A stretch of 64,000 nt of DNA from Bugula neritina (lineage: Eukaryota > Animalia > Bryozoa), in NCBI GenBank assembly GCA_964035545.1, contig OZ037766.1, forward strand, positions 29,328,640 to 29,392,639, given 5' to 3'. Under the pieces are notes generated by a model. The model made no database searches and had not been told where the DNA came from. It saw nothing but the letters and a program-made list of their open reading frames with translations. Below, in pieces: positions 2,752 through 37,914 of the stretch. Both the position numbers and the translations under genes were made by a program. The stretch's first letter is position 1; each line of letters begins with the position of its first letter.

Positions 2752-5700
2752 CTGTTTTTCTGCAATGACGCACAGAGACTCGAGGTCGATACACTTGCAC
2801 TCTTTCAGACATCTTTCCAGAAGTCTGTTAATTTGCACGCCTGGAATACAGAGTTGTCTTGTCAAAGGCTAAGTGACTCATCCCCTCAAACTCGCATCAA
2901 ACGAACAGAGAGAAAATATTTAGACACTTGCATAAGAAAAAAATTTAAAACCGATACTAGTAAATTGCAAGATAATGCAGCCAATAAATGAAGAGTAGTT
3001 CAATAATGCCTTGTCCACTATTTGAGTCAGAAGTTTGTATCAATTCTTCCCCAATGGTGCTATACTTTTATATTCAGAAGAAAGTATTTAATTGCTCGAA
3101 TAGTAGAATAAATATTCTATGAAAAGTCACCTTTACGAGAAAGTCTCCCAGGTTCAAAGCCAGGGCAGGCCACGTGGTTAAACTCTATATTTATCATGAG
3201 TGCTCCTTCATTTGGCCTCGTCTGTTTGGGTTCCACCATACTGCATGTGGCTTGAGCTAAGATTCTAAAAAGATGTAAAAATACAGCAACCAGTGCACAG
3301 GAAAGAAGCTACATTCCTATGTCTGCTTTCTTGTCCATTCAGCATGGGTTAGAAATCATGAAGCAGCACCTCCTCCATACATGCAATAGGGGGTGTTGGA
3401 ATTTTATTAACACAACCATATTACTTGCTTGGGGCAACACCTATAATCACGAAACATACTACAAAATATTCAACAATATTGAAGTCTTCAATGTTTCCAG
3501 TGCTGTGCCAGTTTCAACAATATGTATGTAGATACACAACAAGCTAGAGAATTAACAAAAAAATTATAATTTTAGATTATTGCAGTTTATACAAACTAAG
3601 CTTTTTTTAACTTTGAAGAAAAAAGGTGAAAATAGAATGAAATTTGTATTATATATGGTATTCTATTACATATTGCTTTACAATGTAATATATCTGTACT
3701 ATATATTGCATTATACATTATATTGTATTATATAATGCAATGGTGAAAATAGAATTAAACTTGCATTCAACTGTTAAAAAATAATTTCATAAATCCCTCA
3801 AAATACAATGCATGCAAAACCTTGCCTGATTATGACATCTACATAATACATTCATTCTGTGCTATAAACAGCTAGTTGTGAGTATTATATAGACTATAAA
3901 AATACACAACATGTCTAAATACAGAATGTATAAGGGAATTGGTGTAATTTAGGAGTTATCTTCTATTAGAGAACCAAGTCTCTAACATTTCCAATATTAT
4001 TTGTAAACAAAATAAAAATTTGCCACCAAATAGCAGCTCAAATAAAGAGAGACAAAAATGTGACAGATTCTGCTTAGCAGCTTTTACAAAAGTGTCTGAT
4101 CATTCTTGTCAAATTTTGAGCCCGTGCAAATTATAACCTGTTTAAGTATTAAATGGTTATGGGTTGACTTTTACACTCTATATTCTTAGTGTCTAAACTG
4201 TGATTGGCCGATGTTGATATGATTAACTGACAGCGAGACTGGGTGCAAATATTGTCTTTAAATATTCAGGTAAAAGTGAAGGTCAGCTATAGATTGAACA
4301 TGTGGATTGACACGTTAAAGTAGTCTATAGTGAAATGCAGGTTAAAGTAACACCAACTCAAATCAACCATGTTTAGCAAAAGTAATGTGCTCAGTGTTAA
4401 GAGTTTTAGTCACTAGTAAGTTATATTCAAGTTGACAACTTTTTGCTAAGAGATTAAAAAAACTCTCAGCAAGTAACTAGACAATAAATCCTAAACCAAT
4501 TATTTACAGTTATGAGTAGAAAACATATTACTTCACAGATGTTGACCAGAGGTCACTCTATCTAAAAGGAGTTATGCAGTCTACAAAAATAATTTAATGC
4601 TCGATATTAAAGGTCAGAAAACTTTTGATAAAAGTTGAGTGAAATTTTGCAAAGTTACTTTCACCAGCGAATCTTGCAAGATTGCCTTAAATCAGACTGA
4701 TATTTTGTTGCGACAAACTGGCTAGGAGTAATGCATTCTCCTTGAATGGAATAGTTTAGCCTTTATGTCAGGGTTACATTAGTAACACTCCTTGGACATC
4801 GCAAATAAATAACCCATTATAATTTGAGTGCTGTAGAAAATCGTGAAAAGTTAAAAATTAAGTGCTGCATTTAACAAATAAAAAATCTATTGATCATACA
4901 AAATGCCTGCTTGAGTAGAATATGAATATGGTGTGTTTCTAACGTTTGCTCATATCTTTGCTAAAATTAGCTGACTTAAAATCTTCACTCAGAGCGTTAG
5001 AAGGTTTGACAATCAATAGGGAATTTCACACAATAAATGAAGAGAACATCCTAAATATTGAAAACTTACAGTGTTTCGCCGATATGAACATGACAACACC
5101 CGTAATCTGCACCAAACTCTATCTTAATATTCCGATAATCGTATGCTCTTCGGTCATCTAACCTCTGTAAAAAGGTAGTACATGATTTATGATGCCATAA
5201 GATTAAATTACACAAACTAGGAGTTATGTCCACCATAATGGTGAAAATTTTGAATTAATTACTAGGAGTTACTTAAACTAGGAAAAAACACAATATAAAT
5301 TTTGAACTACACCTTTTTTAATATTTCGAAAGTATATTCAAACTCAGTATTTTTTAAAATTGCTAATTTATTCTGATATAGTAAAGTTTCACAAGCCTAG
5401 TGTAACTTTGACAATCACGGTTATACCCAAATGAGGAGAAAGTAAATATGGATATGCTACTTGCAGCACAAAACACAGTACAATTCATTGGTTAAAGTCA
5501 CAACACAAATCAAGTACAAGTCACTAGTTGATGTTAATCATGACTTTCCGAGATCAGAATATTACAATGAAGTACTGGTTTCCCCGAGTTCTAAGATTAA
5601 GATAGCTATCGTCTTAAAGCCAATTATTAGCAAAAGCATCCAACACAAATTAAAGATAGTAAACAAAGAGAGTAAGTTGATTTAGAGCTTACTTTTGATC

Positions 5701-5758
5701 TTTCAATAAGTTGCAATAGAAATTCCCGTTCACAATTAGCTAAGGGTCTGTCTTTCAT
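2752..5758 (-). CDS. EXOSC9: Exosome complex component RRP45 (PM/Scl-75), coding exons 1-4; remainder not found in window
   Basis: Exons 5758-5693, 5164-5070, 3264-3131 and 2840-2752 have GT/AG ends and consistent phase. They give MKDRPLANCEREFLLQLIERSKRLDDRRAYDYRNIKIEFGADYGCCHVHIGETLILAQATCSMVEPKQTRPNEGALMINIEFNHVACPGFEPGRLSRKGVQINRLLERCLKECKCIDLESLCVIAEKQ, which matches the N-terminal RNase PH domain of EXOSC9. Confidence 0.93.
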
Positions 5759-7850
5759 TGTTAATAGCAACTGGAAACAAATACAGAATATAAAGGTGAT
5801 AATTTTTATGGTTTTAGCAATTCATCTTTGCAAAGACATCTAACATTTGACATTACCATAGTACTAGAATTAGTATTTCGGCATTTTTAAATTGCAATAA
5901 AAACAAATGTAATATTAAAAATAATACTAAGAGTTAGTTTAAATCTAATGTCTAATACGAAGAGTAGTAGTAATGTTAATACATAATGATAAATGTTGGT
6001 TATACTAATTTTCATCTTGCAGTTACTATAATATAACTATATACTGTAGTATATTAACTACTGATCATCCATTTGACTTAGCTGTTAGCACTAAAGTTGA
6101 TGAATATAATATTAATCATCAGTCATCACCCAATCTATAACTTGCAAATGTAAGTGTAAAGATACAAGTAAAAATTATTATAAATAAAATATTATCATTA
6201 CAAGTGAAGCTAAGAGTAAATTAGTAATTGCCAAACTCAATCAGAAGTGACAATTGTCATCATTACTGATTAGTGATTATTTTCAGCTTCAAGCTCATGT
6301 CATTGACTCGTGGTCAATCAGTGTGATCAACATCTAGTTCTAGTGATGTTAATTTTAACATTTAAGAGTTATTATAATTGTTTAACTTAAAACTAATGAT
6401 ATACTTAAGTTATAGTACTTATACTTATAATTATACTTATTAACTAACTTATAGTTTTAGTTATACTTATAAATTTATTTACTTTTACTTTTACAGTTTT
6501 AGTTAATGTTATTAATATTATTTGGTAATTTACTATTCTGGTAAAACTTTATTATAGGTGTTATCACAGTAGTACAACATAGCATGCTCAGTGAGTTTGC
6601 CCAAGTATTATAAATACGTTATGGCATGAAATTGGCAAATAACTGCCATTATAAACCGTTAAAATGTGAAGTGTTCATTTGTTATGATTGTTATTATCAT
6701 CAGATTGACTACAATGCTCAGCTTTTAGCGGATAATATATATAACGGAAATAGATCCGTATATCGTTACATAAAAAACACAATATATAAATATAATTTGT
6801 TTTTTGTTTCAAATGTATTTGACAAAATTTTTTTATTTATTCAATATTAAAACTGTTAAAATAATTGTATTGACGTTCCAACTAATTTCGCAGGATATTC
6901 ATATCCGATTTTCACTAGGTGACATTAAAATATAGAATATCTGAAAAAATCTGGTAATACTTGCTTTGAAACTTCAACATTTTTGCTTTTTGTACAGCTT
7001 TGAATCAATATAATCACTATTGCTGTGGAAATAAAATGTATGTCTAAAAATTCTACATTTCTGACTTCTACACAGTAAAACTAAGAATAAAACCAATATG
7101 AATAGTGATACTAAAAGTAAATTTAAAATTAATAGTAATACTAATAGTAATAGTAATATTAATATTAATAATTAGTAATACTAATACTAATACTAATAGC
7201 AATACTGATGCCGTGATGGTAATAATAAATAATAAGAGTAAAATAAGTTCTAGTAGTAGTACTAGTAGCAGTAGCAGTACTCACTTTAAGTTTTAATTTG
7301 GGCTGAGCCTAGAATATCAATATGAAAAATGGCCATATTTTTCTTTTATGTAAACGGCGCAAATCGTATTAAATTGTCATGGCCACCATCAATGTCCCAG
7401 GCATCGCCACAAGATAAAGACTGATCTGAAATTATAATCATGATGGTTGTCCTTAATATTGCTATCATTTTATTTAAGAAGTCAATGCAATTATTAAAGT
7501 GAACCCGAACCCAATGTTAATTATTGACTGTGGCGATTGTATTGTCATTAGGAATAAACTTTTATTTAAGATAGTCGCAGTGATAGCGTGCCAGAATTTT
7601 TATCAATATTGCTTACTGCATAAACTGATAGTTTGATTGATGTAATTTTAACTATTTTATGATTATCATATTTATAGTTATGCTATAGCTCACGTGCCAT
7701 TGTGGTTTTGATTATATTGCTTCGTATGAAAAATGTTGCTACTATTGTCATATTAATTCGAAAACACTGATGAATTTCAAAGTTTTTGAAGCAGTTATAT
7801 TGATTTTATTTTAGTAGCTGCCTACGCACCGTTGTTATATATTTTCTAAA
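5759..7850. promoter_or_regulatory. Head-to-head interval between EXOSC9 and the THAP gene (likely bidirectional promoter with non-coding first exons)
   Basis: Divergent ATGs at 5758(-) and 7851(+). Acceptor-like sites lie just upstream of each ATG (TTTGTTTCCAG ending ~5771 minus; TTTTATTTTAG ending ~7814 plus). There is a minus-strand GTGAGT donor at 7284 and a CACGTG at 7691. Confidence 0.45.
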
Positions 7851-10800
7851 ATGGAAAACAAAATTGGAGTCAAAAGATGCAGTGCTCCACATTGTTATAA
7901 TAAAGTTGGCAGTAAAAACATACAGTTTTTTCGATTTCCAAGAGAAGAAATAAGGTAACTCCTACTTGATTTATGTTATCTTACAGACATGTTCATCTAA
8001 TCTATGCTCTTTTGTTTTAAAAGTTCAAAATTACTATTTAGTTCAAAGACCTTCAGCTCAATTCCACCACTACATAGGTTTTTAAATTTTATTATGGTTT
8101 GCTGATGTTTTTTTTTCAAAATGGTCAAAGAACTTTTAAACTTTTATTTAGTAACTTAGATATGCTTTAATAATTCTTCTCAAGTGTATAATACCTACTT
8201 CAGGTGCCAGGAGTGGTTGGATAATATTCTAGATGATGATTTGGCAGGATTGACTGTTAAAGATCTCCATGCAACGAAGGTTTATATAAATACTGTTGCA
8301 TTGGTATCATTTATTTCTAGCAATTTTATTCATCATTAGAAGGCTTTAGTTTTATTTGAGCTAATAATACAAATTTTATTTTATTTACTCTAGCAACACA
8401 GACTTATATTTTAGCAGAGTTGGACTGACTAATCACAATAAGGAATTATAGAAAGCAATAGAATGATACCAATATCATTATTACCAGTGTAGATAGGCTC
8501 GGTAATTCACTAGCTATTTAGTGTATAAAAATATGTCAAGGGTTCAACTTAGTGTCTTGTGTTTTAGTTGACATAATTATTGGACAATGGGAAACCTAGC
8601 TGGATTACTGTTATTTCATGTCAGATAATCAAAGTCTCTCTTTTTATGTACACAGACGAGTTTTTGTTTTCAGTTAATATGTTTTTCAGTTAATATGTGA
8701 AGCTCACTTTGCCCCGAATCAGTTTACCAACAGTGAGTGGAGAGATAAACTCAATGCTGACGCTATCCCTACAGTGTTTGATGCCCCTCCTGCATTTTCA
8801 TCACAAACACTGAATCGAAAAGTATGTTTCTATATATTTCCTAACTAGTTTGTTATAATACTTCTTTACATTGCTGAGTGTCTAGCATGCTTACATTGAG
8901 ACTTATCAGTTACGCAGTCATTTCAGGAGAATGCCATGTATTAAGTGTACAGGAAAACCTGTTTATGCTATTTTGCTGGAAAGTTTAGATATTTTCCTCT
9001 TTTTCCAAATGCATGTCATTAATTCCCAAACTGTATCCTGTTTTTTTGGTTAAATGATTGAGAACAACAAAAATACCTTTGTCACATTTTGCTCAAATTG
9101 ACACCTGTTCAATTGTATGCATTCACTAGGTGGTCAAGTTGTCTTCAATTTACTCACCTTTATTTTACAGGAGCTGCCAGAGCATGGCGAAACATTTGAG
9201 TTTGCAAAGAACTTGTAAGTAATAAAGTGTATGAGATTATATCATGTGTTGTTTTGAGACTAGGTCAAGTCTTGTACTGGCTGTTGCCTCGATCTGTCAA
9301 TGTTGTCTGTTCTAGTCACTCCATAAATGTAATGTGTCCGGGATTCTATAAAGAAAGTATGCATTTTTGTTTTGTCTTTTTCAAAAAGCCAAAAATATTT
9401 AATAAGTCAAAGCTGTATTGGAGTTGTATCCTCTATCTAGAGACAACATAAAAACAGAGCCCTGGGTGTTACTCACCGACATACTGGTCAACCAGAAAGG
9501 AGGTGACACATTTAGCAGTGCCCTTCCCTCTCTCGAACAGTTTCTCATCACAGACGTCTGCTCTCTCAGCGCGTCTGCTGAGTCAACCAAACCGGTCAGC
9601 AGCAAAAAAAGGGGTCCCAAACCGGGCCCTAAAAAATACAAAACTCTAACTGTGCCTAACAAAGTTACAACTACGGTTGCTGGCAAGCATAAGAATACTG
9701 GCAGTGGAAAAGGTCGTGGTCGTCCCAAAAAGAGTGCTAAAAAGTACAAGACGTCAACTGTGCCTAAGAAGGTTGCAACTACGGTTGCTGGCAAGCGCAA
9801 GAATACCGACAGTGGACAAAGCGTTTCTTCTCCAATTATTAAAAAAGTAAAACCTTCAACTCCAAACAAGCAATCAACAGCTGTAACTGCTGATAAACAA
9901 AAAGATTCTGCAATTGAAAATGGTGTTGCCCTGCAAAAGGAGGGAGTAAAAGCTAAAGGCGGTCGAAAACGGAAAACTGCCGTTACTCCTACTGATGTTA
10001 GTGCTGCAGCTAATGTTAGTGCTGCCACTAATGTTAGTGCTGCTACTAATGTTAGTACTGCAGCTAATGTTAGTGCTGCAGCTAATGTTAGTGCTGCCAC
10101 TAATGTTAGTGCTGCTACTAATGTTAGTGCTGCAGCTAATGTTAGTCCTGCAGAAGCTGAAAAGAAGAAAGATGCCTCAACATCACCCATCAAATGTGTC
10201 AATGGACAATCGACACCAGCTACAGGTGGGATGTCACTGTTCATTTCCTTTAATAGTATCAGCTATGTAAGAGTTGTCTTTTCGAAATCACTCATAAAAT
10301 GTAAAATTCTGTAATTATGTCAATCCGATAATTTTGAATGTCCACATTCTTTGGTTGTTTATTGTAGTTTATTTTGCTGTCATGTTATTTATACCTTCAT
10401 GAGTTTCAGTCAAAATCTCAATTTTGCTCAGTTGAAAATTTCAACGTGTTGCTTTGCATTATTATTGAAACCATTTCTCAAAATTATTGTCTTGTGATAA
10501 CTTAGTCGGCTGATTTCATGATGACAGTGCAAATAGGGCGAATAGTGATTGATGAATCTTTGTAGATATCGGCATTTTCTTATTTTTTTGTCGATTATAT
10601 AATTCAGTATGATATGACATGTCTAACAGGAATATTGCTCTGTAACAGCAATAATTATAAATAATTCAATTGATATTTTTCAATAAATTTCAGTCAACAC
10701 TACTCAAGTAAAGGCAGGAGAGAAGGCTGAATCTGGTTGGACTAGAGTGGTGTGGGACCCAACGTCCTCCCGTGTCATGGTGACTGAAAAGAACCTGAAA

Positions 10801-13800
10801 AGTGAGTCTTTCAAACTGACGGTGTTACCTCAAAATACTACAGCAGTATTGCGTTTTACATTTTCTGTGTTGATGTCGGTATTCAGTGCCTAAACATCTG
10901 GTGTTTTCTATTGTTTGTCTTTTTATTATCTTAAAATTAGCATACTTTTCTCAATGTACACAGTTTTATCAGTAGCTCTTATAGGCTGAGTGTTGAAAGT
11001 TATTTTAATAAACTGGGCCAACAGCTTGATGGTCTTTACTGAGATTCGAACCACTGACCTTTTGTTTATTATACCAGTGCTTTAACCACTAGATTATGGA
11101 TGCTTTTTTGTAGTTGTTATAAGTTTAATGTGGAAAGTTTAAGTTGTAAAAACAAGGAAAGAGTCGTCTCTTTAAAGGATTTTATATGCTGAATATTGTA
11201 TCTAACTGGGGGGTAGCATTTGCCGGTTTAGTTAAGTAGCAATTACCTACTCTTTTGATTTTTATATCACAACTGCTAATTCTAATTGGAATTTTTTTAA
11301 CTCCACCATTTGTTAGGGGGAATTTATCTGTTTAATATATTTTTATTGAATTACTTTTTTAGCTGAGAAACAAATGCATAAAGCCGTAAACATAGCCAAC
11401 GGTGAGTTTATCTCCATATAATTTAGTCTAACAAAAAAAATTTTCTTCAAAGTAATATGTTATAATAATCTATGCACTAAATAAATAGGTGGGTTTGGTT
11501 GCCTAATTTTACTGCTCATTGATGCTAAAGTAAGGGTTAGCGCACAAGTAGAGATTAGCTTGGTAGACAAGGGAGGGGGTAACTCCAAGTAATAAAAGAA
11601 CTGTAGGAAAAGCTATTCACTGTACAGCAGCACTACTCTATAAGCACAGTTTTAGTGTTTTACTCGTATGCTGAAGAAACTTATTTAAGTGTGTACCGTC
11701 TAATATATGCACTGTGTAAATCTCGAAGCTGCTTGGTAGAAGAGGTAAATGTCTTGCAGGTAAACAGCCAAAGTCTAAAACAAAAAAATCCTCTGCAGCT
11801 AAAGAAGCTTCTCCCGAGGATCCCAATAAACGTAAGTATACAGGGTGACCTGCAGCATGATATTGAGAGTTATCTCCCCTTCATTTATTGATTTACAAAA
11901 TTTAATGGCTAGTTCAGACTACAGCTTGAGATGAACTGTCATCGATGGCAGTCTGAACGGGCCATAAGTTTGTAATCTTCATTCTATAATTATACATTTT
12001 GTCATTCATAACAACCATCAGCTTGATTTTTGTACATATTAAGGCTGAAGTGCTGCGCTGCTGTAAAACTTTGCTGTTTTATGTGAACAAGATTCCCACT
12101 GGGTATCGGAACCTTCTCAACATAATCTTTCTCACCAGATGTAGTTTATATTTCACACTAGTCATGTATGAGAGAGAGAGTTTATATTCTCACTGTATAG
12201 GAGATGTAGTTTATATTTCACACTAGTCATGTATGAGAGAGAGAGAGTTTATATTCTCACTGTATAGCAGATGTGGTTTATAATTCACAGATTTTGTGAC
12301 GGACCTCCGCAACGTGCCTCTCTCTCTTCTCAAGCCTCAGTTCAGGATACAGCTACATGCTCACTGTGACGTCTGCAACAAAATCCGCAAAATCTCCGAG
12401 ACTTGTAAGTTCACTGGTTATTCTGTTATGAGAAATGTTTAGTTTAGAGTTATTTAATTACTGTTAAAATGCTTTTATGTAAAACAGGCTTTGGGTTTTT
12501 TTTATTTAAAACAGTTATGCTGGTAATGAAAGTCGTGTTCTCTTTTCTGTGTTAAATAGCTGACAACTCCCAGATGAATATCTAATAATTATGATGAAAT
12601 GATTTGCTAATATCCTAATTGTAGTGATAATCATGTTATTTTTAGTGATCACACAGTAGGGTTGATACGTATAATAGGTAATAGGTATTTGAAGGTCAGC
12701 TCACTGGTTTTATTTGCTGATGAAAATACTTAGTTATGAACACTTGAAAGGAACCAACAGTGGTAATGTAGTTCTGTTCTGTGTATTCACCAACTGTTGT
12801 AGTTAGAGCAGCTGTATCCTGTAGTATGACCATTTCATACTAATTCTATTCCTTTTCATCCACCAGCTTTAGATTCTGCCCAGAAGCAGCAGGAGGAGAA
12901 TGAGATGCTGAAAAGTACTTGCTTTGCCTGCGGCAAACAGCATCACTTCCCCGACACTCGTCTGTTTGAGTTTCCTGCAGACCCTGCCAGGTATTGTATC
13001 TCGGAGTAACACTTAATGATCTTGACCTTGTAAAGCAGCCGCTCTGGCAAATATTTTCAACATGCTATATATTTTTAACATATTTGTAACAGTGCTAAAT
13101 GATTCTTGGTGTAGAAAATCAGTTTTTGTTCATAGCAGCCTTGCCCAGCATTATTTACTAAATACGAGTATATGCTATGTTTTACCCACTTGCGCACACA
13201 CATACACAAACTCACTCACATACACGCGCACACACACACACGCATACACAAATACACACACACTCACACACACGCACGCACATGCACGCACGCACACATA
13301 CACACACATACGAATTCACAAGCGCTCGAACACACACACACGTCCTATATATTATATGTATGATATATGTACTTCTTATGCACACTTGTTTGCTATGATA
13401 TGGCATGATTTAGCACTAGGAGACTCATGTATTGTATATGATTACAGTTTCTTCCAATGGAGAGTGAACTGTAACTATGCCGACATTGAGCATAGTCAGC
13501 ATAAGACCAAGGTGAGGGATGGGGCAACCTAAACATTTAGAATACATTAACAACTACTCAACTCTTCATAGAGTATGAAATCATTGTTTTGTTGGATTAT
13601 TTTTCATGTTTATAGTCCTGTACGTTTTTCTCTGTTAGTACCTGTGTAATAGACACTTCACAAAGAATCAGTTCCGAGGAGATCACCAGTTTGGACCTCT
13701 CATATACGCTGCATTGCCCACCATTTTTTATGAGAGGGGGCGTGTCAAGGACCCACGTGATCTTCCATTTAATCTTAAAGCAGTTTCCATTAAGCAGGTG

Positions 13801-14805
13801 AATATGAGTTTATTAGCTCTATTTATATCTCCACCGCAGTTCATTGCATAGTCATACAACTAGTTTATACTCTAGAGTCTAGAGAAATAGTCTAAAATTA
13901 GATTGTATATTCATCGATTAAAATTGTAATATATTGTATTACTTTTACTTCTTACTGATTAAGTATATTGTTTTTAAATGAAGGAAATCAATAGAATAAA
14001 GTAATATAATATAGAATATTTACTTATGGCAAAAAGTAGTTGCATATTGAATTTTTCTTTTACTCGTTTGCTAGTTGCTTTAGTAAGTTTTCTCTTATCT
14101 CTAAGATTTGTAACAATGTGTACATTTACACACACAATAATGTAGCCAAATTTAGGTTATATATATTTTCCCCAACAATTAGTAGACTAGATACATATGC
14201 AAATCAATGTGTTTGGAATATAAAGTAATAGGGTTGGAAAAACTATGAAATATGCACGGTCATGTAGGAAGAAGCTCCTCTGTTTAGTAATGTCTAAAAC
14301 TTTCAAAGGTTTTGTCAATAGTAATACAATTGTTTCAGAGTTATCTCTCTCTACTAATACTAACTGGATTCATAATAATATAATACACGTTCTTTTATTG
14401 GGAATTTCCCAGAAAAAATTATGTTTGGGAATTATCATCTTTTTTTTATGTGAAAAACCCAAAGTATTAATATGTGGTGTTTGGAGGCAACTTATGCAAA
14501 TTAATTGTATCATCTCACAAACATTTCGTTTCATGTTAACATAGTTGAAGTTTTCTTATTGAAGTTGAACCAAAATAGTTTATTATTCACAGAATGTGCA
14601 GGAATTCATATTCTTATTGATTCCTTTTATGACTTTCTATATTGCGTGAGTCATTAAATAGGTTACATTGTCAAAATTTGAAAGCTGTCGCTATAGAAAG
14701 TGAAATCTTAGTTTTATGCTTATAAATATTTTATACATATTTACATTATATTATATATTTAGTATAACATTATATTATACATCTATACTAACATTATATA
14801 TGATA

Positions 14806-14893
<88 letters not shown>

Positions 14894-17800
14894 TTATATT
14901 TATTTTGTACATTTAAATTATGTTATGCATTTTGCATTATATAATTATGCATTATATAATATTCATATTCTATCTCACAGCCTGCAAGCAAGCGTCCAGT
15001 TAGCAAAATAATGACAACTCTAACCCCTGGGGAAGTGAGTCATTTCAATTCTTTAGTAACTGAACTGTAGAACAAATACAAATACCTTCTCACTATTTGC
15101 CAAAATTTTGAGAGTTGTAGTGTATAAGTCAGTTAAAAATGTGTTAACTAACACCGCCTGTGCTATTTTTTTGCACAAATTCTGAATTTTTTTTATATAT
15201 TTTTGATTTGAGGTTCAACAATGGTGTAAAATCTGATGTTGACTTGAAAATAATTTGTAAGTTATTTCTATTTTATGCTCACAGCAGAAGATATATGTTG
15301 CTTATTTATACTGAAAAATATTATTCTTGCATAATTTTGTAGCTTGTCGTTGGTGAGATGGTGCCCTATCATGATGGACTGAAAGGAAAGGTTTTAGTGG
15401 CTAAAGACGCAGCTACTACAGACATTAATGGTATCTTTCTACTCCTCTATATTGCCTGAGTTCTTTAAATTAAACTTTGTATTGCACATCATTTTCTTGA
15501 GATTAGGCATGTAGGGAAAAATCTAGAGTTTTGGCACTCGTAAAAATATATGTTAAAATTTGAAATTAATTTTCATTGAAGCTCTCACTATTCTAAAGTT
15601 CATTTTCTGTCATATGTTTTAGTAATTTTTTTTGTTATAAAGACACTTTCTAGTTGCGTAGAAGTTGTGCCATCATTGCTTTTCAACGGGGATTGCATCA
15701 GCTTTACATTTAGTCCATGCCACCTCATAGTGAAACTGTCAACTACAATGATTCATAATTGACAATAATAATTTTGAGAAATGATCATATCGTGGAGGTT
15801 GTGAAGCATTTAATTCTTTCGCTAATTGTGTTTGTTTAGTTTCTTCAAGTCTTTTGCTTTTGCTATGGTGCTCTGTTAGTTTCGGAACTGAAAAAAATCT
15901 CTATGCTCCGTTTGCTCATGTGATTGTCATAAGGATAGTTTCTTCACCATTGTTGCTGCTTTGAAATGTCGCACTACATTTAGTACATTTACATTTCTCT
16001 AGTAAATAAAGCGTTACTAATTATGTATATAATACAATTATTGCTGGAAAAACATGAATATCACTGCATGGTTGAGCATCACGTTTCTAGTTTCAACTAT
16101 TCAACTATCTAGTAGACAGGGTTATGAGAGCTTATAATATATGATATCATATAATATAATATGTGATATAATATAATATATTATAATAGATATAATCAAT
16201 GAATTAATATCTAATTGAAAGGTATATAATTATAATAATATATATAATAATTATAATTATGTGATATCTATTAAAGAAAGTTCACACATTTATATGTGGC
16301 AGAAACATCGATATTTTGTTTTTCAATTTAAAAGTAGTGCGTAGTTGACTGCGGTATTTTATATTTTTCTCATTTAAATATGAGATTTAAATTCTGTAGA
16401 ATTTATGAGTGGACAAATAAGGGTCGCTCAGCATTAATTCTATAAATAGATTCACTAACATATATATCATGTATAAAATTAAGCAAGTTTTCTGAAAACA
16501 AAATTACTTAAACTTAATTATCTGTAAACTATTTGGCCATAACACTTTGAATGTGGATTCACTTAATGTGTGAGGTTTTTGTGACGTTAAGTGGGGAAAA
16601 AGTTAATTTATAATCCAGAATAATTAGAGTCATAAAAATATGAAAGTAATAAAGTGTTTGGTGATTACTATGGCAGTAGTTGACCGGATCAGTGAGTCAT
16701 TTTTTTATATTTTTAACCAAATTCGAACTTTCCTGGTTGACTCAAGTAAAAAAACAAGCTCAACGTATTTTCACTATAAATTAGTAGCGAAAGTTATAAT
16801 TCAAAACATGTTTTTAAAGTTCCTGAAAATAAATTTTTGTTTAGTAAAATGTTATTGCCTATACCTTCTGTATAGGCGCCTTTTCAAAGCACCTCTACTG
16901 CTGTGGGTAAACTGTTAGACGTTCATTTCTTTGCCTCATTGAAGAATTCACACAAATTGGTAATTTAGTGCCTCATTGGTTGCGGCTTATTCTTTCCTGA
17001 TGGTTTTGTATGCTCTTTAAGTAAAAAATGTATTTCATTGTAGCTTATGGCAGGTCATTAAATCTACATTATACAACACTTTTAGCCTGCATTATTAGCA
17101 GTAATAACCGTGAACACCTTTTAATCGTCTACTGAATTGATTTCGAAATAGTATACTAATTCAATTTTTTGCTGTTATTACTCAGCAAAAATATTATATT
17201 CCAGCTATGCCATTCACCAAACGGTATTCATTATTAGTATTTAAATATGAGGTTTTTTAGGTTCATCTATATTAATTATCACGTCTTATAATTGTTGTAC
17301 AAAATGCGAGAAATAACTAACAATGCTAATTATGGGTATAGATTGTTTTCTTGTTTTTTTTTTATTTTGTGAATCAAGCAGTCTGAAATGTTGCAATAGT
17401 CTCATTTCCTTCCAAGCATTTATCTAATCACTCAGAGTCCATTCAGGAGCCGTAGTGGAGAAATTGAGATGGCCTAAGTTCCTTAATTTTATTATAACAG
17501 TTTTAGTTTGGGCTGCGGGTTGAAATTCTTTCAAGAACATAACTTTTTTTGCTACATTATTAGTCTAGAACACAGGCTTTTCTCCACTCCTACAAGTTCT
17601 CAACTTACTTACTACAAAAACAAGACTTGCGCATATAATACGATACAAATTTAAGACCAATATTGGTTTACTAAATTAATGCATTATAGTATCACATGTT
17701 TAGTTTCTGGAGCTTTAGTACCAGAACTACACTAGGCCTAGTGGCAGTGTGGTATTAAGTTAGGGCTTGTTACTGTGACAACTAACTTCTTAATAGAGAA

Positions 17801-20800
17801 ACCTAGCTTAATTTATAATAAGCATTTTCGTGGTAATAAATTCTCCTGTATATATGACAAAACACTGAATAACTAATCCTTTTTATTCATTCATTTTAAG
17901 TTGAAGTTTTAGGCCCTGATTCATGGTATTTTCTGCTGTAATTTTGTCTAATCATCATTCAATAATAAGACACATCATTAATACAAAACATTTCATAATT
18001 GTATGCGGTAAGTTGTAACTGAGCAGTTTTAAAAACAAAGGCAGATGTATTATCTGTCCAAGTTAGCTAGTTCCTAGCCCATTGCAATGAAAAATGACTT
18101 GAGATAAATTAAATTAATATTCCGCTATGTAACATTCAAGACATGCTGATGTTTAAGTATGAATTTGACCAAACAGAATGTATCGAGGAGAAATTTGAAA
18201 ATATAATATGCAAATTATATTTTACGTTTTTCATCTCCTTCAGATGATGATATTAATTTTATTCTAAAACTCTGCCCCAGTCTGAACTATATTAATTTAA
18301 GCATTAATTGTTTTATATAAATACTGTATAGAGCTAATATAGGAAGCAATAATACCGCCATGTTAATTTGACGCCTTCCGATGTTATAATGAATTCCTTT
18401 TTTGAAACAGTTAATCTCTCATTCTTGCTCATGAGTAAATAGAACTTTTTTATTTTGAAGTATTTTTACTAATTGGTTATTGAGCAATCTTATGATAGTT
18501 TTGAAACATTTGGTTATACTTGAGCTGATCATTTCTACTCCAGTTGCAACTATTTTCTCTGTAATGACTTACCTGGGTGCATAAGGCAAGGTAGGTCATT
18601 GCAGTTTTGATGAATATTGCTGACTCTCATATACTGTTTAGGCTACATTATAGTTACCATACTTCTGGACCTCGTCATAAAATATTGCACATTTAATAAA
18701 TTTCAGTAGTTAATTGGAATTATCTGTTATCTTTTTTAATTTTAGACTTTAGGTTCCCAGTAGAGTACTAATAACTCTTAGTAGAGTACTAGTAACTCTT
18801 AGTAGAGTACTAATAACTCAAAGTAGAGTACTACTAACTCACAGTAGAGTACTACTAACTCTCAGTAGAGTGCTAGTAGCTGCCAGTAGAGTACTTCTAA
18901 CTCACAGCAGAGTACTACTAACTCACAGTAGAGTTCTACTAACTCACAGTAGAGTACTACTAACTCTCAGTAGAGTACTAGTAACTGTCAATTAACTAAT
19001 AAATCAATTTTTGCAGTTATGTAAACTTCAAGATCAAAAGGCTTTATTGTTACTGATACATTTGAACTTTTGAACTAGATCCAGCGATGAGCTGAAGGTT
19101 GTTTTCAAGAGCTTTGCAATTATAAAGATTCTAACACAATATATAATTTGTCTGGGTAATCGGCTTTGAAGCTCACAGGTGGTTAGCTCCATTGTTATCT
19201 TTCATGCAAGAGCTTATTTCTCTGCTGTTTGCTTAGATTGAAACGTCTGGGGCAGAAAATTATTCTCAGCTGGTAAACCGCCTTGCTTTCACTATTCTAA
19301 GTTTCATTTTGTTGTCTCTAAATCGTTATTTTTAATTATTGAATCACTTTTGGTAAAAGATGACAACTCTTGCTTTGCTTGTGATGGGCAACCTCAATAA
19401 AGATCTACTTTAAGTAAAATTCACTCTACATGAGGGTATTATTCACTCTACATGAAGGTATTATTCACTCTACATGAGGGTAAATGTGCTTATTAGGGGT
19501 CTGGACCCTCGCCTGTTGTATAGTTCTACAGTAGTATAGGTTGATGTTCGTCACCAGAACAAGTCTTGTAGAAGTTTGCCAGTGGGAGTTGACTAGTAGT
19601 TGGCATATCTGTGAGAATTGATGTCTATTTCCTCCTATAAGTTTGGTCTTTCCATGTCTAGTCCTACCAGTTGCAGATGGTGTTAAATTGTGTGCCTCAT
19701 CTTCATAGTCAGTATCCTTACTGTTATAAGTGCTTTAAATACATTGTGTTTTTTGTGTTGGTATCAGCAAGCCCTCGAGAAAAGGATTGTTATACATCCT
19801 TAAGCGCCTTTCAGGCAAAAACCTCTCTAGGGATTTTTTGCCACCATTAGATTATGATTTTGTTTTTGAAGGCCTGTTTGTGTGAAGAGACAAGCCGCTC
19901 TCAACCGTGACTTGAACTTCAGTCAATCTGCATTTTTGGCAAACACTAGATGCTTGGTGATGATTTAGTACCATATTATTGTTGTGTCATAGCTCAACAA
20001 TTGGGTGATTCACTTTTTCAACTGCACACTGACATTGGTAAAGCATGTTGACAGTTACCTACAGGTGCTATCAGTATCAAATCTGCATTTATACAGTTGA
20101 TCTAAACCCCTTCAATGCTTTTCATTTATTTCCTTGTGACATCATATTTCTAAGTAGCACAGTTTGTATTTATCACTGAAATTTCTGAAATATACTTTGA
20201 AGTAGGCAGTATTCCGCTGTACGTTATCAAGTTTAGAAAGGCAAGAAATCTGGTAGTCTTTCCTGAAATTTTTCTTCCCTGAGTTTCAAATTATACTAAT
20301 TCATAGTTAGTTTTCATAGCTTGCCATCTCCCATGTGATGTAATGTGTTGTAGCGATTCCAACTTTTGGTACTTGCAGCTGGTGTGGAGTTGGTCAAAGA
20401 GACAGAAATAGATGTTGATGAAGACGAAGAGGATTTGCCTCCTTTCTCTCCAGTAGAGAGTGAGGAAGAAGGTGGAACAGCAGAAAGTGGAACCAAAGGA
20501 GGTACATCTGGTAGTAGTATACATGATTCTACTCAGGTGTGAGTCTTCAGTTAGCAGGAATGGCAGCTTTCTTGGATGGCGGATAGTTGAATCCAAAGCT
20601 GAAAATATCTTTCACTACTGCTATTTTCTGATAGAGTGTGACTTGCACTGCAACTGGTTTTTATTTTCAGCTCTGACTCTTCAGACAATACCAACAGAAA
20701 GGAAATATAATCGAGCAAAAAATCGGAAACGGACAAAAGTGCTTGAAGATGAAGAGCTCAGTGATGATGAAGGTAGAAGTTGTGTTTCACTGGTCAAGTC

Positions 20801-23800
20801 TGGCTTAGTCCTACTAGCTACCCTATCTAGTACCCTCTCCTATATCCTAGTCCTATTACCTACCTTATCTAATACCCTCTCCTATACCCTAGTCCTTCCT
20901 ACTAGCTACTCTATCTAATACCCTCTCCTATATCATAGTCCTACTACCTACCCTATCTAATACCCTCTCCTATACCCTAGTCCTACTACCTACCCTATCT
21001 AGTACCCTCTCCTATATCCTAGTCCTATTACCTACCTTATCTAATACCCTCTCCTATACCCTAGTCCTTCCTACTAGCTACTCTATCTAATACCCTCTCC
21101 TATATCATAGTCCTACTACCTACCCTATCTAATACCCTCTCCTATATCCTAGTCCTGCTACCTACCCTATCTAATACCCTCTCCTATATCCTAGTCCTTC
21201 CTACTACCTACCCTATCTAATACCCTCTCCTATATCCTAGTCCTACTAGCTACCCTATCTAATACCCTCTCCTATATCCTAGTCCTTCTACCTACCCTAT
21301 CTAATACCCTCTCCTATATCCTAGTCCTTCTACCTACGCTATCTAATATCCTCTCCTATATCCTAGTCCTGCTACCTACCCTATCTAATACCCTCTCCTA
21401 TATCCTAGTCCTTCTACCTACCCTATCTAATACCCTCTCCTATATCCTAGTCCTTCTACCTACGCTATCTAATATCCTCTCCTATATCCTAGTCCTGCTA
21501 CCTACCCTATCTAATACCCTCTCCTATATCCTAGTCCTTCTACCTACCCTATCTAATACCCTCTCCTATATCCTAGTCCTGCTACCTACCCTATTCTCTA
21601 TCCGCTTTTTCTTTACCCCCTCTGATATCCTCGCCCCGCACTATCCGATACCCACTTTCGAAGGCCCGCTATCCCCTCCCTCTATGTGCTTTACCTCTGC
21701 TAACCATGCCGAGGCTAATCCTGATTTATGCTTTGGCTATCTTTCATTGCCACATCAAAGTTTAATTGACAAAAATTCCTCCCCCAGTATCAGGTTTACA
21801 TAAACTCCACGTGGAGAAAACAAGAGAATTATCTTCCAGGTTCCGTGGTTGTAAATCACTGATTCTTATTAATCTTTGCCCAGTATGGTTTCACAACAAA
21901 CTGCACATCCCACTTCTTATAAGGATCCCACCTCTTTCACGTGTTCTGCCAGTTTTGACTGCTTGAAATAAATAATAAGAGCTGAGATTATCTCACCACA
22001 AAAGGTTATCAATGTCCACTCTAAGAAACCTATCTTCTTTAGATATAAGTAACATACCTCACGTGTTTGAGTTGCTCTCGGCTCACGTTTCTCTCTCCCT
22101 CTAATGCAGACTTTGTGGTTCACCTGCACCCACAGTTTCACAGGTCTTATTGGTGACTTCAGCAGTTATCAATATCATTCTATAAGGTTGACCTCGCTTC
22201 TTTAGTTATTACTCAAACTTGGTGAATCTTTTTGACTCTTAGATTCAATAATTTTAAAGTAATTTAACATTACTATATGCCAGACTGCTGTTTTTAATTT
22301 TAAGCCACGGCATGAATAACTTATAATCAATTTTAAATGAACCTAAATTGATAGTCAATCTAGCCCTAGTAATTTAATAGTTTGAAACAAAATGCTCAAT
22401 TTTTTTGTAACTTGTTTGAGTTTTTTACTTGCTTGTTTTGTTTTCTTCATTCGGGTTGAGGTTTGGCTAAATGTGGGGTTTTTCTAAACCTTAGTCGCTT
22501 GATTCGAGAAGAGTATTCTAGCTGCTATCTCAGACTTAGACATAGCATGGTTCTGTTCACTCACTCAGACTATTAGTATAATCACTTTTTTATGAAACAA
22601 GGATACATTTAAATTCCCAACCTCTTCTATAACTACAAGAACTTGGCAAGCTCAAGCGCTTTCATCATCCTAACAATTATTTTTTATTTATTGCACTTTG
22701 TTATGCTTTGTTATCTGTTGCCACCAGTAATATCTTTTGTACTGTTCACTCTTTGTACTAGGCGTGGTGCAACATTTGCCCACATTGACGGTTTCAAAGC
22801 TTTTGATTGTTGAATGTATAATATAAAATCTGATGCACTACACAGGATACGACCTAGATTTAGCTATTGCCTTTATTGTCGTAGCTGATTGCTGGTGTTC
22901 AGCTGTAGCATGAAACCAAGTCTTGCTCTCACTCATCTCTCCACCTCTTTATTACCCCCTTCTCATCGCCCCCCCTTCTCACCTCTACACCTCTCTATTA
23001 CCCCCTCTCTATCACTTTCCCTTCTCATCTCTCTATCACTCCCCCTTCTCATCTCTCCACTTCTTTTATCACTCCCCCTTCTCACCTCTCTACCACTCCC
23101 CCTTCTCATCACCCCACTTCTCACCTCTCCACCTCTCTCTCACCCCCCCCCTTCTCATCACCCCACTTCTTTATCACTCCCCTATATTATTCTCCTCATC
23201 CTCTCATTATACCTGTCTAATTTCTTCCTCCGTTTTCCTTGTTATTATATATACTATACATTAAGAACTGTTTTCCAATGTGCTTGCAGATCCCATTCAA
23301 CAGTCTCAGTTCATCAGGGATCTCCAAAAGGCACATTCTGATGAAGTCAGAAGTTTGAATAAAAAGTTCTCCCAAGAAATCCGGTCACTGAAAAAACAGT
23401 TGGAAGCTCAGCAGAAGCGAGAGCAAGAATTAGAAAAAAATAGAACAATTGATCCAAAATATCTGCTTACAGAACTTTCTAAGTACATTCCGCCCTTAGC
23501 ACTGGAACTTGTGCAGCACAAGCTAATGAGCAGTATGGGGCACGGCCATCTTAATTTCAGTGCTGCCTACAAGGAATGGGTGCACTCCATACAGCAAATG
23601 AGTCCTCGAACATTTGACAAACTGAAAGAGATATTCGTGTTGCCTAGTCTTCGTCATCTTCGAAATACTTCACGGAATGTGAAGCTCCGGGAATACATGT
23701 CTGGTTCAAACAGCGACTCTCTCCTTTTAGAAAAACACATTGATTACAGCCAGTTTGAAAAAGTTAAAGAAACTGAGCTGTTAGAAGCAGTTAATCGGGA

Positions 23801-23897
23801 ATCAGCTGACGCATCTGGACAGAGCTCAGCTGTTCCAGTTGACTCCCAGCAACTCTCTGACAAGCTGGGTTTTCTTTTTGAGAAGACAAATAATTAG
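7851..23897 (+). CDS. Double-THAP zinc-finger protein with AT-hook, acidic tract, coiled coil and P-element/THAP9 transposase-like helical segment (~930 aa, ~17 exons)
   Basis: Exons 7851-7954, 8204-8279, 8690-8821, 9171-9214, 9441-10225, 10694-10801, 11363-11401, 11760-11831, 12291-12404, 12867-12990, 13448-13511, 13639-13797, 14981-15034, 15343-15430, 20379-~20501 (donor uncertain), 20671-20772, 23290-23897. THAP1: CSAPHC..FFRFP..RCQEW..ICEAHF..AIPTVF. THAP2: CFAC..LFEFPADP..QW..LCNRHF..ALPTIF. AT-hook GRGRPKK. The last exon has a heptad coiled coil followed by FSAAYKEWVHSIQQMSPRTFDKLKEIFVLPSLRHLR. Confidence 0.85.
9994..10155 (+). repeat. In-frame 18-nt coding minisatellite (NVSAA[A/T]) x9 with 72-nt higher-order period
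   Basis: aatgttagtgctgc(a/c/t)(g/a)ct units; units 1-4 recur almost exactly as units 5-8. Confidence 0.9.
11031..11103 (-). mobile_element. Degenerate tRNA-derived head (SINE fragment or tRNA pseudogene)
   Basis: Minus strand reads A-box-like TAATCTAGTGGTTAAAGCA and B-box GGTTCGAATC at tRNA spacing. Acceptor and anticodon stems do not pair. Confidence 0.55.
12136..12275. repeat. Tandem duplication (~66-68 nt x2) upstream of a THAP-gene exon
   Basis: agatgtagtttatatttcacactagtcatgtatg(ag)n tttatattctcactgtatag occurs twice. Confidence 0.8.
13192..13342. repeat. Imperfect (CA)n microsatellite
   Basis: CA/CG dinucleotide run. Confidence 0.9.
14808..14892. repeat. (TA)n microsatellite
   Basis: About 42 perfect TA units. 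Confidence 0.95.
18759..18986. repeat. 21-nt minisatellite, ~11 copies
   Basis: Unit agtagagtactactaactc(a/t)c. Confidence 0.9.
19418..19481. repeat. 21-nt tandem repeat x3
   Basis: attcactctacatgagggtatt repeated. Confidence 0.85.
20806..21594. repeat. 42-nt (some 46-nt) minisatellite, ~18 copies
   Basis: Unit ctagtcctactacctaccctatctaataccctctcctatatc. Confidence 0.92.
22925..23235. repeat. Pyrimidine-rich degenerate repeat before the last THAP-gene exon
   Basis: Recurrent ctcccccttctca / ctctctatca words. Confidence 0.75.
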
Positions 23898-26800
23898 ACT
23901 TTTCTTACTCTGTTTCAAATCAAATTTAGAGTTTGTTAGTACAGATTTATATGCAACTAGTAGGTTGACTAGTAGTGTTATTAGCATTTCCTCAAGTGTG
24001 GTTAAGGATGAGCTTTTCCTATATCCTTGTTTCCTTTTGCTCACAACTAGTGAAGGCTTTAAAAAGGATGTCAGTGTTTTATAACCATTTATCTATATAT
24101 AGTGATATTATATGGACTACTCCCTTTTGGAATCACTCTGTAAAAATACTGTCTAGTGTTTTCTAAACCTGTACACTGCTAAATAATTTTTTTGTTATTA
24201 TGTATATATTTTTTAGAAATAATTATAAATTCTTTTTACACCTTTATCTTATATGGAATCTAAAAACAATTCATCAAAAATAATATGTCACGTTGCTTTA
24301 CTCCGATTTATGTTGGCGTATGAATTAGTTTAGTTTACTAAAAAAGTTACTGGTGTTGATTATTAAAGTTTAAATCCTTCTTAGGAATTTTTGTAACAAC
24401 ACTGCAAGCAAAATCTAACAAGCATGATTAAAAGACCTTTTTGGTTTAATGGGCTACAGAAAAAAAAAATATTTCGGCTCTATATGTTAGTCTTCAAGTG
24501 CCCTAAAACTTTTATCTAGTGACTAAAACACATCAGCTGATGCTGACACCTAAATTAGATTTTCCACAGCTCTAGGTTAAAGTGGAGGGGTAGACTGAGC
24601 AGCCTTTATAATCTGTCAGAGGTAGAGCTCAGACTATTTTTTGTTGACTTGTCCATAAATATATGTTCTGTGACTTGATTTCTGCATTTAATATATAGTT
24701 TCTACAGAAATAACAGAAATTTGTTTGTTGTATATTTCATTTAAAAACCACAACACTGGTAATTTATTTAATTTAGTTGGTTAGTGAGTAAAACATTTGC
24801 TTTTTAAGAAACCATTAAACAATAATTTGCATAGATTTACTTAAATCCCCATGTAATCTTTAGTTGCTTTGTTATGACACTGGTTAGTCAATATATTCTT
24901 AATCTTTCAAGCTATTATTCAGAAATAAATAAAACTAGATTAGACGTCATATCATAATTATATGGCAATTCTGACGAAGCTTCATAATACTTAATCGTAT
25001 TATCATCACCTCTGAAATGATCATTTTAGCAATTTAGAGAATGTGAATTGTGTAGGGCTTATCATAGATCTATATTGCAATATCATTTGGTAATCATGTA
25101 ATATTCTAAGGAAGGTACAAATAGATAATTTAAAAAAGTGCTTTATATAAGAAAATTCATCCTATAGTTATTTGCAGTTTTGAGCTAAATTTCATACATT
25201 AAGATCAAAAATAAATCAATGTTGAACACTGCATCAAGGTTTGCCATGCCTTATTAACCAATCACTGGCCAATTTCCTGAACACTTGAAAGAGATGTGCA
25301 TTCTGTAGCACCATAAATGTTTTATTTTTTCTATGAAGAAGTTTTGTAGTAGTCATCTAGGCACAAGAATTTTGGTTTGGATAAAAACAGCTTTTCAAGA
25401 AAATAAACCTATCACATGTATCTAGTTATTTTTTATCTTTAGTTTCGTAAGTATATAAAAGTCATAAAGGACATATAAGCTAATATGTACTCATTCCTCA
25501 ATTAAACGGCATGTTCATCTGCTTTCTAAACAGTTTGAAACATTTAAGTGTTATTGGTTTAGTCATTTGAACTACATAGTAACAAGTTTCTGTAGGGGTC
25601 TGACCATCTATAGTCACTACCAAATTGTGTTATAGCAATCTTCCTTTCAGTGCTATTTAAATAGAAATTAATTGTTGTGAGTAGCTTAGACTTTTTAATC
25701 TGAAAAGTATAAGTTTTAAAGAGTACAATGCATGACATCTAGTTGCATACTGCTCTTTCTGTCATTGCTCTGCAGTATCGCATCATATATATTTTTATGC
25801 TGTGGGATGGAAAGTCTCTAAGCCTGTATTCACAATGCTACTCCAATTACCGGGTGATGTAAAACTCACTAACTCTTGGCTTAGATATTGATTTTGTTTG
25901 TAATAAGTTGGTGCTAAGTCCGGAAAAAATTAATTCACTTATTAATTTACTAAAAGGTTGTATATTGGAATGGGTGAAATTTTAGTTGGAAGACCAATTC
26001 ATGGTTATCAATTTCATTTATTTGTTTTATTCAAAGACTCAGATTGAAAACCTGTTACAGGCACTACAGTGGTATTATTTCATCTATTTATATCCCTAAC
26101 CTATTTTGAAAAGACTGAAACATTGTTTGACAGAAATGCCTCTCCCTTCCCGACTGTAAAATTGCCATGTTGCACATGTGACTGCCCAGAAGTCACAGGA
26201 TCTACAGCTTCTCAAGATTACTAGGATGTTTACCTCAGATTCAGTGCTAATACATAAATCATAATCTGCATGTCCTCTTTTCTTATTCTGTATACGGAAG
26301 GCCGCGGTTTACCTTCTAATACCACCTATAAAATGAACATCAATCTAATTTTTCTTAAAGATAATTAAATCTTCAATAGGCTCTGGAATTGCTTACTTTG
26401 TTACAAAACTCACCAGAGCACAATATGAGAGAAGGGGGTACACTTAGAGAATCAGCATTAATATGACAAATGTGGTCTTCAAGTCGTTAATCAGACAGAT
26501 GAAATGCTTTATGCAACATATGCGGTGGTATCAGCTTCATTTATCTAAAACTTATTATTGTATAAGGCACAATCAGAGAGACTGGGGACTCAACTACTCA
26601 TTCTTAAATGTGTAGGCTCTCTAACTTTGCCAATGAGCTGTATCAGGCAATGAATCAGCAAACCCGTGCCATTAGATAACATTTTTCAAGCTCCACAGTT
26701 TAAACAAGTTGTTGAAAACTAGTTAAATGCTATACCTTATATAAACTAGGCTTCTCATTTAACATTTTCTCAATGCAAAATAACAATGTTTACATTTTAT

Positions 26801-36345: not shown

Positions 36346-37914
36346 TCAATGAGCTACACCAGCCAATGGTCGATAGAGTTCACTTTCTTTCAGTAGTAAG
36401 TACTGGCGTTGAAGTTCTTGATATGAGGGGAGGTAGGAGAGACCCCCGTAAGGATTGTATAGTGAGCTAGTAAGGCTAGTAAAAGTGTCTGTTGATGGTG
36501 CTGATAGCTTACTCGCCATGTCGTAGAAACTGACAGGAGGGGCGGCCAGGAGGGCTGCCCTCATTTTCTCAATAGTGATAGCATCAATGGCTGGTGGAGA
36601 GATGGAGGTTGGAAATGTGAAGGAAGTGGGGAGCATCATGGGATAGTTGGATGAATACTTAGTATCCTTAGCCTTGAGGAGAGACTTTGGCTTTCGTCTT
36701 GGTCTATATTTATACTCGGGATGATCAGACATGTGTTGAGCTCGAAGACGCTTGGCTGAAATAAACATCGTGGTTATTTAAATAAGGCTTGAATAAATTC
36801 TTCTATTTTAAAAAGTGTCTATTGTACCTTTAAGGCACTTTTACTGAGTTTAAGAAAGCTCATACATGTGTACATAACTGGTAGTCACTCACCTTCATCT
36901 ATAAATGGTCTTTTCTCCAGATCTGTTAACGTCTTCCAATCAGCACCCAATCTCTTGCTGATCTCGGAGTTGTGCATTTTGGGGTTATCCTGTGCCATTT
37001 TCCTTCTTTGTGCTCTAGACCTAAGAGTACCAAACATCAGGAAAGTTAAATAAAAGTAGACATCGTAATATCCAGTTTCAATCAATTTTTCTTCGAGACA
37101 ATCGTTAGTTCCAGATATTTGTTGTTGGAACAAAATCGAACCATCCCAAATAATCGGATTAAATTAATTCTAACCACCAGCTCATTGCTGGCAGACAAAC
37201 AGATTGCTTTAGGTTTCCATGGCAACAAGATATGCATCAGCGGCAAGCCCAGGTGCTAGTGAATATTAAGTGACAATAGCAATGCCAGGTTTACAATTGA
37301 AACTGCATTGCGATATTGTGTTGCCATGGTAACATCAGAAAGTTTTGTCATGTTATTCATCAGAGGACAATAGATATGGAAAAATAGAAAAAGGAAATAG
37401 AATGTCGTAGGCATTGATGGGTGATTAGTGGAGAGTCTGTACCAACTAGCATCAGTTAGAATATGATAATGTGAGGAACACAACAAATCAGATGCCTGAT
37501 GAATATTCAGACAGTATAGATTTTGAAAAAAGAATTTGAACGTTTCGCAAAAAATATACTATGCCAAATTCTCATATTGATTCATCTCAATACTGGCTGT
37601 GGGTTGTATAAGTATTTTGCCTTCTACATACTAACAGAATAAATACAGTTTAAACATTCTTTTTATCTCAAAATAGAAAACTCTTCTTATATACCTACAA
37701 TCTGATTTGAAAAGTTAAAATCAAAAAGGGAAATTTTGAAGAGGAAAACACCTTTTATTTAAAAGCTTCTCAACGCAACTTGTGAAGGCTTTCTATAAAA
37801 ATCAACCACCTTTGTAAATGTATGTAAGAGACAAGTAAAGAGCAACACTTACCAAACCATGAAAGCATTCATTGGTCTTTTGATGTGATCCTCTCTGTTA
37901 TGTTCCATCATCAT
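36346..37914 (-). CDS. SoxB2: SoxB2-group HMG-box transcription factor (Sox14/Sox21-like), 3 exons, ~200 aa
   Basis: Exons 37914-37853, 37020-36893 and 36755-36346 give [92 protein letters not shown] very short N-terminus and RRKPK (not RRKTK) after the HMG box are SoxB2 hallmarks. Confidence 0.93.
37213..37333. promoter_or_regulatory. Pair of RFX X-box motifs in SoxB2 intron 1
   Basis: GTTTCCATGGCAAC (37213-37226) and GTTGCCATGGTAAC (37320-37333), each one mismatch from the palindrome GTTGCCATGGCAAC. Confidence 0.65.

Follow-up and report, generated by a model that had tools for sequence, protein, structure and literature searches.

A candidate domesticated gene of the bryozoan Bugula neritina built from the DNA-binding part of a P-element-type transposase

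The KP repressor (207 amino acids) and the 66-kDa repressor of the Drosophila P element carry a THAP finger, a coiled coil or leucine zipper and a helix-turn-helix (HTH) domain but no working catalytic core, and they dimerise and bind DNA (PMC7776569). In the cryo-electron microscopy structure of the P transposase itself, the HTH contacts the inner half of the terminal inverted repeats and the leucine zipper that precedes it dimerises (PMC7776569). Domestication of P-type transposases is also known already, from vertebrate THAP9 and from the Drosophila neogenes. THAP9 is a single-copy host gene with the order THAP, coiled coil, HTH, and its product is reported to retain both catalytic activity and the RNase H and GTP-binding domains (cited in PMC3698922, PMC10983969). 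The P-neogenes of the obscura and montium groups of Drosophila (Pinsker et al. 2001, cited in PMC3698922) are described as immobile P-derived host genes without transposase activity. Here we present a gene at positions 7851-23897 (+ strand) of a 64,000-nucleotide stretch of the Bugula neritina genome, the whole of which we call the window. With a probability of about 0.7, we regard it as an immobile gene of the host that was domesticated from a P-element/THAP9-type transposase, of which it keeps the DNA-binding N-terminal third.

Ten exons at this locus fit a single open frame of 2268 nt, or 756 codons. All introns are of the GT-AG type and every phase is compatible; this was judged one exon at a time, by translating the + strand from stop to stop and inspecting the exon boundaries, and the protein searches were likewise run per exon. 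The predicted product of 755 residues would comprise a THAP finger, a basic linker with an AT-hook, a second THAP finger, a linker with acidic tracts and a stretch resembling a nuclear localization signal (NLS), a coiled coil, a P-type HTH and a short acidic tail. From the second THAP finger to the HTH, the order of domains is that of the first ~200 residues of the P transposase.

The tie to P transposases is found in the last exon (exon 10, 23290-23897, + strand), which encodes the coiled coil (~23292-23441), the HTH (~23445-23690) and the acidic tail up to a TAG stop at 23895-23897. In its translation of 210 residues, a long predicted helix (10-59) precedes a helical globular part (~61-142), which is followed by a tail of low confidence. 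The original prediction, made from the letters of the DNA, had announced in this exon a coiled coil and then a P-type dimerisation segment, with the stop about 70 residues further on. The layout is as announced: the 42-residue segment starts at 23556, behind the helix, and the stop comes 71 codons after it. The P-type similarity of the segment also stood, while its dimerisation label had to be given up: it belongs to the HTH (PF12017), and the probable dimeriser is the coiled coil in front of it.

Profile and sequence comparisons agree on this assignment. The Pfam profile PF12017 (‘Transposable element P transposase-like, HTH domain’) matches the exon over positions 3-72 of its 73, with 14.5 bits and E 0.048. 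When the exon was compared by phmmer with 1.84 billion representative proteins, three matches only were returned: the counterpart in a sibling species (96% identical), a more distant relative that we call P0002 (29% identical), and a third protein, P0003 (whole-library E 6.9e-4). P0002 also stops soon after the HTH, without RNase H, and obtains 20.5 bits on PF12017 (E 6e-4). P0003 is a true P-type piece, with both PF12017 (E 1e-7) and RNaseH_N (E 2e-29), and the similarity of the last exon to it stops where its RNase H domain starts. BLASTP with the HTH region, freed of the coiled coil, gave E 7e-8 to P0003 and E 7e-5 to the HTH of a P element resident in the same genome, to which the identity is 28%. 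A word-indexed homologue search with the family profile of the last exon brought no new members, and the same search with P0003 found only itself.

Structural comparison leads to the same family. An AlphaFold model of the last exon reaches a predicted local distance difference test score (pLDDT) of 70-80 in the globular part. With this model, Foldseek returned the Drosophila P transposase complex (6p5a and 6pe2) as the top two of 350,542 chains, at E ~1, and VIA-align ranked 6p5a first of 48,161 representatives (Z 6.9, root-mean-square deviation 3.1 Å over 71 residues). The latter alignment pairs residues 63-141 of the model with residues 128-199 of the transposase; the remaining top rows are single-helix matches to the coiled coil. 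Profile and structural similarity to P transposases had both been expected in the original prediction, and both were observed, the former with a score below the curated cut-off. In a search by language-model features (ESM Atlas), the best match was a PF12017 cluster (0.91, 196 of 256 features), and of the ten best matches that bear a family, eight belong to the PF12017 family or clan. Although no single test is strong, we accept the last exon as a putative homologue of the coiled coil and HTH of P-type transposases, because five kinds of evidence (Pfam, phmmer, BLASTP, structure and language-model features) agree on the family, the region and the order of domains. The ESM Atlas search also contains arthropod protein clusters of ~145-270 residues with THAP and/or PF12017 and without RNase H; these may represent P copies with deletions or additional genes of the KP kind.

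Very strong purifying selection acts on the coiled coil and HTH, a result that concerns the last exon. Contigs from the sibling species are colinear with the window, with ~85% identity over 6 kb that are mostly non-coding and 93% within the last exon. The ratio of non-synonymous to synonymous rates (dN/dS) is 0.057 for the exon overall, at dS 0.31, and falls to 0.009 in the coiled coil and HTH, with Fisher p ~1e-17; in the coiled coil and HTH, 1 replacement stands against 24 silent changes, and in the tail the ratio is 0.21. The tail holds two islands common to P0002 and this gene, namely a D-Y-S-x-[FY]-E motif and a C-terminal L..K...LF motif, and this conservation hints at a role in binding a partner. 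P0002 lies on a 4.2-kb contig without recognisable neighbours. Another sequence of the sibling lineage, P0005 (contig L023, JGI 3300003318), displays an in-frame deletion of 60 nt in the C-terminal tail by which one conserved island is lost; an allelic variant, a further cryptic species and an artefact of assembly are all conceivable.

The gene is expressed and its last intron is spliced in RNA. Contigs from four runs, belonging to four studies and 90-95% identical to the window, were aligned over 21600-27599 and are confined to 23288-~24264; as they barely touch the preceding intron or the downstream DNA, they are taken to be RNA. In all four runs the contig leaves its match with the window at the acceptor of the last exon and continues as the 3′ end of exon 9, with 2 differences, the start of the alignment at 23288 instead of 23290 being due to a shared AG. 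On the other side, the pieces end at 24103-24264, so that the 3′ untranslated region reaches over 23898-24264 on the + strand; an ATTAAA is present at 24362. Upstream of the last exon the contigs carry a further 308, 1009, 1171 and 2129 letters. The model predicts 1660 nt of coding sequence in that direction, of which exons 8 and 9 supply 271 nt and no ATG. The long upstream sequence in the contigs, together with the shortness of these two exons and their lack of a start codon, implies further upstream coding exons on the transcript. From the phase fit and the length of one contig, we infer that a single transcript would carry the THAP exons together with the last three. The original prediction had the last exon spliced to the THAP exons; the splice from exon 9 to the last exon was seen, and the join to the THAP exons was not among the RNA aligned.

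The upstream exons contain the two THAP fingers that had been predicted, and both turned out to be complete. The first displays the full C2CH signature over exons 1-3, all on the + strand as are the exons that follow. Exon 1 (7851-7954) provides the start codon and the N-terminal third with C-x4-C and FRFP, and ends in phase 2 (donor AAG/gtaact); exon 2 (8204-8279; acceptor ttcag/G, donor AAG/gtttat, phases fitting) provides the middle with the conserved W; exon 3 (8690-8821) provides the C-terminal third with C-x2-H and AIPTVF. Because the introns split the domain, Pfam detects it in halves, exon 1 as positions 1-27 (E 3.5e-3) and exon 3 as positions 52-87 (E 9.4e-5). The second finger is distributed in the same way over exon 5 (12867-12990; N-terminal third, C-x2-C, FEFP), exon 6 (13448-13511; conserved W) and exon 7 (13639-13797; C-terminal third, C-x2-H, ALPTIF). 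Exon 6, which the original prediction had not listed, restores the phase between its neighbours through its boundaries ttacag/T and AAG/gtgagg, and exon 7 matches positions 52-87 of the Pfam THAP profile with E 0.056. Both modules are interrupted at the same two sites, 4 residues after FP in phase 2 and just before C-x2-H in phase 0. Such identity of intron positions and phases points to the duplication of a three-exon unit within the gene. In the resident P element the corresponding THAP part lies in a single exon, which fits the view of the introns as a feature of the host gene.

Between the two fingers, exon 4 (9496-10225, 243 open codons) encodes a basic, repeat-rich linker. It includes a canonical AT-hook, as foreseen, read directly from the translation (GKGRGRPKKS, an R-G-R-P core with basic flanks; GRGRPKK core at 9712-9732), an AT-hook-like KKRGPKPGPKK at 9604-9636 and a simple (NVSAA)n repeat. 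The AT-hook gave no Pfam match, as is usual for so short a motif; for the exon as a whole there was no Pfam match either, and no homologue was found in the homologue search or in a scan of metagenome contigs. A second contig scan, made with exon 7, found no relative either. The donor at 10225 matches the phase of exon 5, and it is the 5′ boundary that is uncertain: 9496 is the in-phase choice, and a stronger-looking acceptor at 9441 (ctctatctag/A) is out of phase with exon 3. Use of the latter would end the frame after ~21 codons and leave THAP finger 1 only; it may represent an alternative isoform. This region is open on both strands, with an open reading frame of 281 amino acids on the minus strand (9399-10244) to which an 18-bp repeat in 8.8 copies contributes; the frame is most likely a by-product and not a second gene. 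Beyond the second finger, the acidic tract of the original prediction is present in both exon 8 (20354-20536; DVDEDEED..ESEEE) and exon 9 (20685-20772), the latter beginning with the basic NLS-like stretch before it turns acidic. Exon 8 has no ATG; its acceptor is tag/CGA in phase 0 and its donor CAG/gtgtga. The splice of exon 9 to exon 10 is the one supported by RNA.

This locus behaves as a host gene. Exons 3, 7 and the last exon each occur once in the 216-Mb genome in a protein-level search, and a DNA search with the whole 16-kb span matched only intronic repeats elsewhere. No terminal inverted repeats flank the gene, the only palindromes there being those of microsatellites. Genome-wide Pfam searches for RNaseH_N, GBD and RNaseH_C (PF21787, PF21788, PF21789) gave no match within the window, while they readily detect the resident P-type family elsewhere in the genome. 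The original prediction had called this a host gene devoid of RNase H and GTP-binding domains and of terminal repeats, and not one of many dispersed near-identical copies. It is borne out by these searches, together with the dN/dS and the spliced RNA of four studies.

The resident family is of interest in its own right. One of its copies (G000:C8:~1832640-1836420; L021 ~3640-7420) has THAP, coiled coil, HTH, RNaseH_N, GBD and RNaseH_C. At least seven near-identical copies keep the HTH and RNaseH_C without RNaseH_N, and about 20 further copies hold only the second half of GBD onward. The near-identity of the copies suggests that the family was recently active. THAP is also present in the Kolobok and ISL2EU transposases of the same genome.

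As for the mode of action, the most economical reading of the domains is a dimeric DNA-binding regulator. The protein would dimerise through its coiled coil, and the dimer would bind specific DNA, possibly composite sites, with up to four THAP fingers and two HTH domains, the AT-hook adding contacts in the minor groove. Having no nuclease domain, it should neither cut DNA nor transpose. It would instead act as a sequence-specific, non-catalytic regulator, KP-like in build, which could occupy its sites or recruit partners via the acidic regions and the conserved C-terminal motif.

Could such a protein be directed against the resident transposons? A KP-like repressor encoded by the host would either cover their ends with its THAP and HTH domains or disable the transposase by forming coiled-coil pairs with it. 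The domain content is that of KP, which binds P-element DNA and inhibits the transposase (PMC7776569), and the genome does carry a P-type family with near-identical copies, hence recently active, of which one has all domains. On the other hand, the HTH of the gene shares only 28% identity with its counterpart in the resident element, and P0002, at 29% identity, makes the gene far older than the present transposon copies; moreover, in the known cases, KP and the 66-kDa repressor, it is the element that encodes the protein. We thus consider this explanation rather unlikely, and for the same reasons of divergence and age a dedicated repressor role seems less likely than that of a general regulator and, on its own, improbable. 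It is also unlikely, to a slightly greater degree, that the gene is an old, conserved chromosomal guardian of KP type that recognises P-type ends or pairs with the transposase and so restrains the still-active resident family. Were this last reading true, a defence against transposons that works through a protein would have become fixed as a host gene in an animal other than an insect. The opposite extreme, a decaying immobilised remnant or pseudogene without function, is favoured by the absence of the catalytic core, as in deleted P copies, but it hardly agrees with dN/dS of 0.009-0.06 at dS 0.31, an intact frame over ten exons, single-copy status and spliced RNA in four studies. Given this selection and expression, we rejected a pseudogene and keep for it only a marginal likelihood; a mobile element was rejected as well, on the single-copy exons and the missing terminal inverted repeats.

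Two further explanations concern the unity of the gene and the origin of its C-terminal part. The locus might hold two genes, one with THAP, AT-hook and THAP ending near 13800 and a separate one with acidic tracts, coiled coil and HTH from 20354. The 6.5-kb intron 13797-20354 is not bridged by any read (RNA covered 21600-27599), and the searches brought no relatives of the upstream exons for comparison. Yet exons 8 and 9 lack an ATG and their frame is open right from the acceptor, which calls for a coding exon further upstream that ends in phase 0; the donor at 13797 fits. One contig, moreover, has ~2127 nt upstream of the last exon, against 271 nt from exons 8 and 9 and a model prediction of 1660 coding nt with untranslated sequence in addition. 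Two genes are quite unlikely. Alternatively, this would be an ordinary, lineage-specific THAP gene whose C-terminal helices resemble the P-type HTH only by chance or convergence. Invertebrates do have very many THAP genes (PMC10027918), the finger is also found in the Kolobok and ISL2EU transposases of this genome, and the Pfam score is under its cut-off with a Foldseek E of ~1. Against chance, four methods agree on the family, the region and the order of coiled coil, then HTH, and P0002 scores 20.5 bits on PF12017; we find this explanation very unlikely.

The domestication of a P-type transposase thus remains our preferred reading, and several observations weigh against it. Those on homology are that no single test proves it: the PF12017 match is under the curated cut-off (14.5 vs 23 bits), a Z of 6.9 is moderate for a model made of helices, the alignment behind the AlphaFold model contained one P-type piece, P0003, and leaving this piece out gave a model of too low quality for structure search (pLDDT 56.5). 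In addition, the family profile of the last exon compared with the sequences of solved structures gave nothing at E 10. Those on the gene are that the last exon was met in just two other lineages in the data searched, that relatives were retrieved for no upstream exon, confining the evidence of conservation to the last exon, and that the acceptor of exon 4 wavers between 9496 and 9441. On the side of the transcript, no read or contig within the aligned region joins the THAP exons to the last three, and the RNA comes from a sibling species, 90-95% alike. The function, finally, is deduced from domains alone.

Concerning the surroundings, the gene lies among ordinary host genes: its neighbours are an HMG-box (SOX-like) gene (36349-37163, minus strand) and a cytochrome P450 gene (55517-60193, + strand). 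An RNase PH-domain exon lies 5.6 kb before the start of the window (G000:C2:29322946-29323053, minus strand) and may be the EXOSC9 named in the original prediction. The long intron harbours at 17440-17594 a dispersed repeat of ~145 bp that resembles a short interspersed element or a miniature inverted-repeat transposable element, with more than 35 copies of 84-88% identity on many chromosomes. C-rich minisatellites occupy introns at 20806-21594, 18758-18986 and 22932-23182; one of them consists of 18.5 copies of a 42-bp unit and begins 34 bp past the donor of exon 9, and a second consists of 10.9 copies of a 21-bp unit. Between them, these intronic minisatellites account for the strongly negative GC skew at 20-24 kb.

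The gene and the known P-derived regulators share major features, and each of them differs from it in a distinct way. KP and the 66-kDa repressor are products of the transposon itself, arising when it suffers an internal deletion or when an intron is retained; their source lies within terminal repeats and exists in many copies, whereas this is a single-copy chromosomal gene of ten exons, conserved between species, which also has another THAP finger, an AT-hook and acidic linkers. THAP9 has retained the RNase H and GTP-binding domains that are missing here. The Drosophila P-neogenes resemble the longer 66-kDa form and are insect-specific, independent events; they are not known to have either the THAP duplication or the AT-hook. 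Stand-alone THAP factors of THAP1 type, which are sequence-specific DNA-binding regulators with a C2CH THAP often followed by a coiled coil, have only the THAP in common with the P transposase, whereas this gene also keeps the P-type HTH, and this is what ties it directly to a transposase ancestor. Our searches of the open-access literature brought up no account of a conserved host gene built in this way. What would be new is a KP-like make-up fixed as an intron-rich, selected and expressed lophotrochozoan host gene, in which THAP was duplicated and an AT-hook added. The gene would stand clearly midway from a transposase to an ordinary THAP factor, in a genome with active-looking P-type elements where host regulation and transposon restraint can be directly tested against each other.

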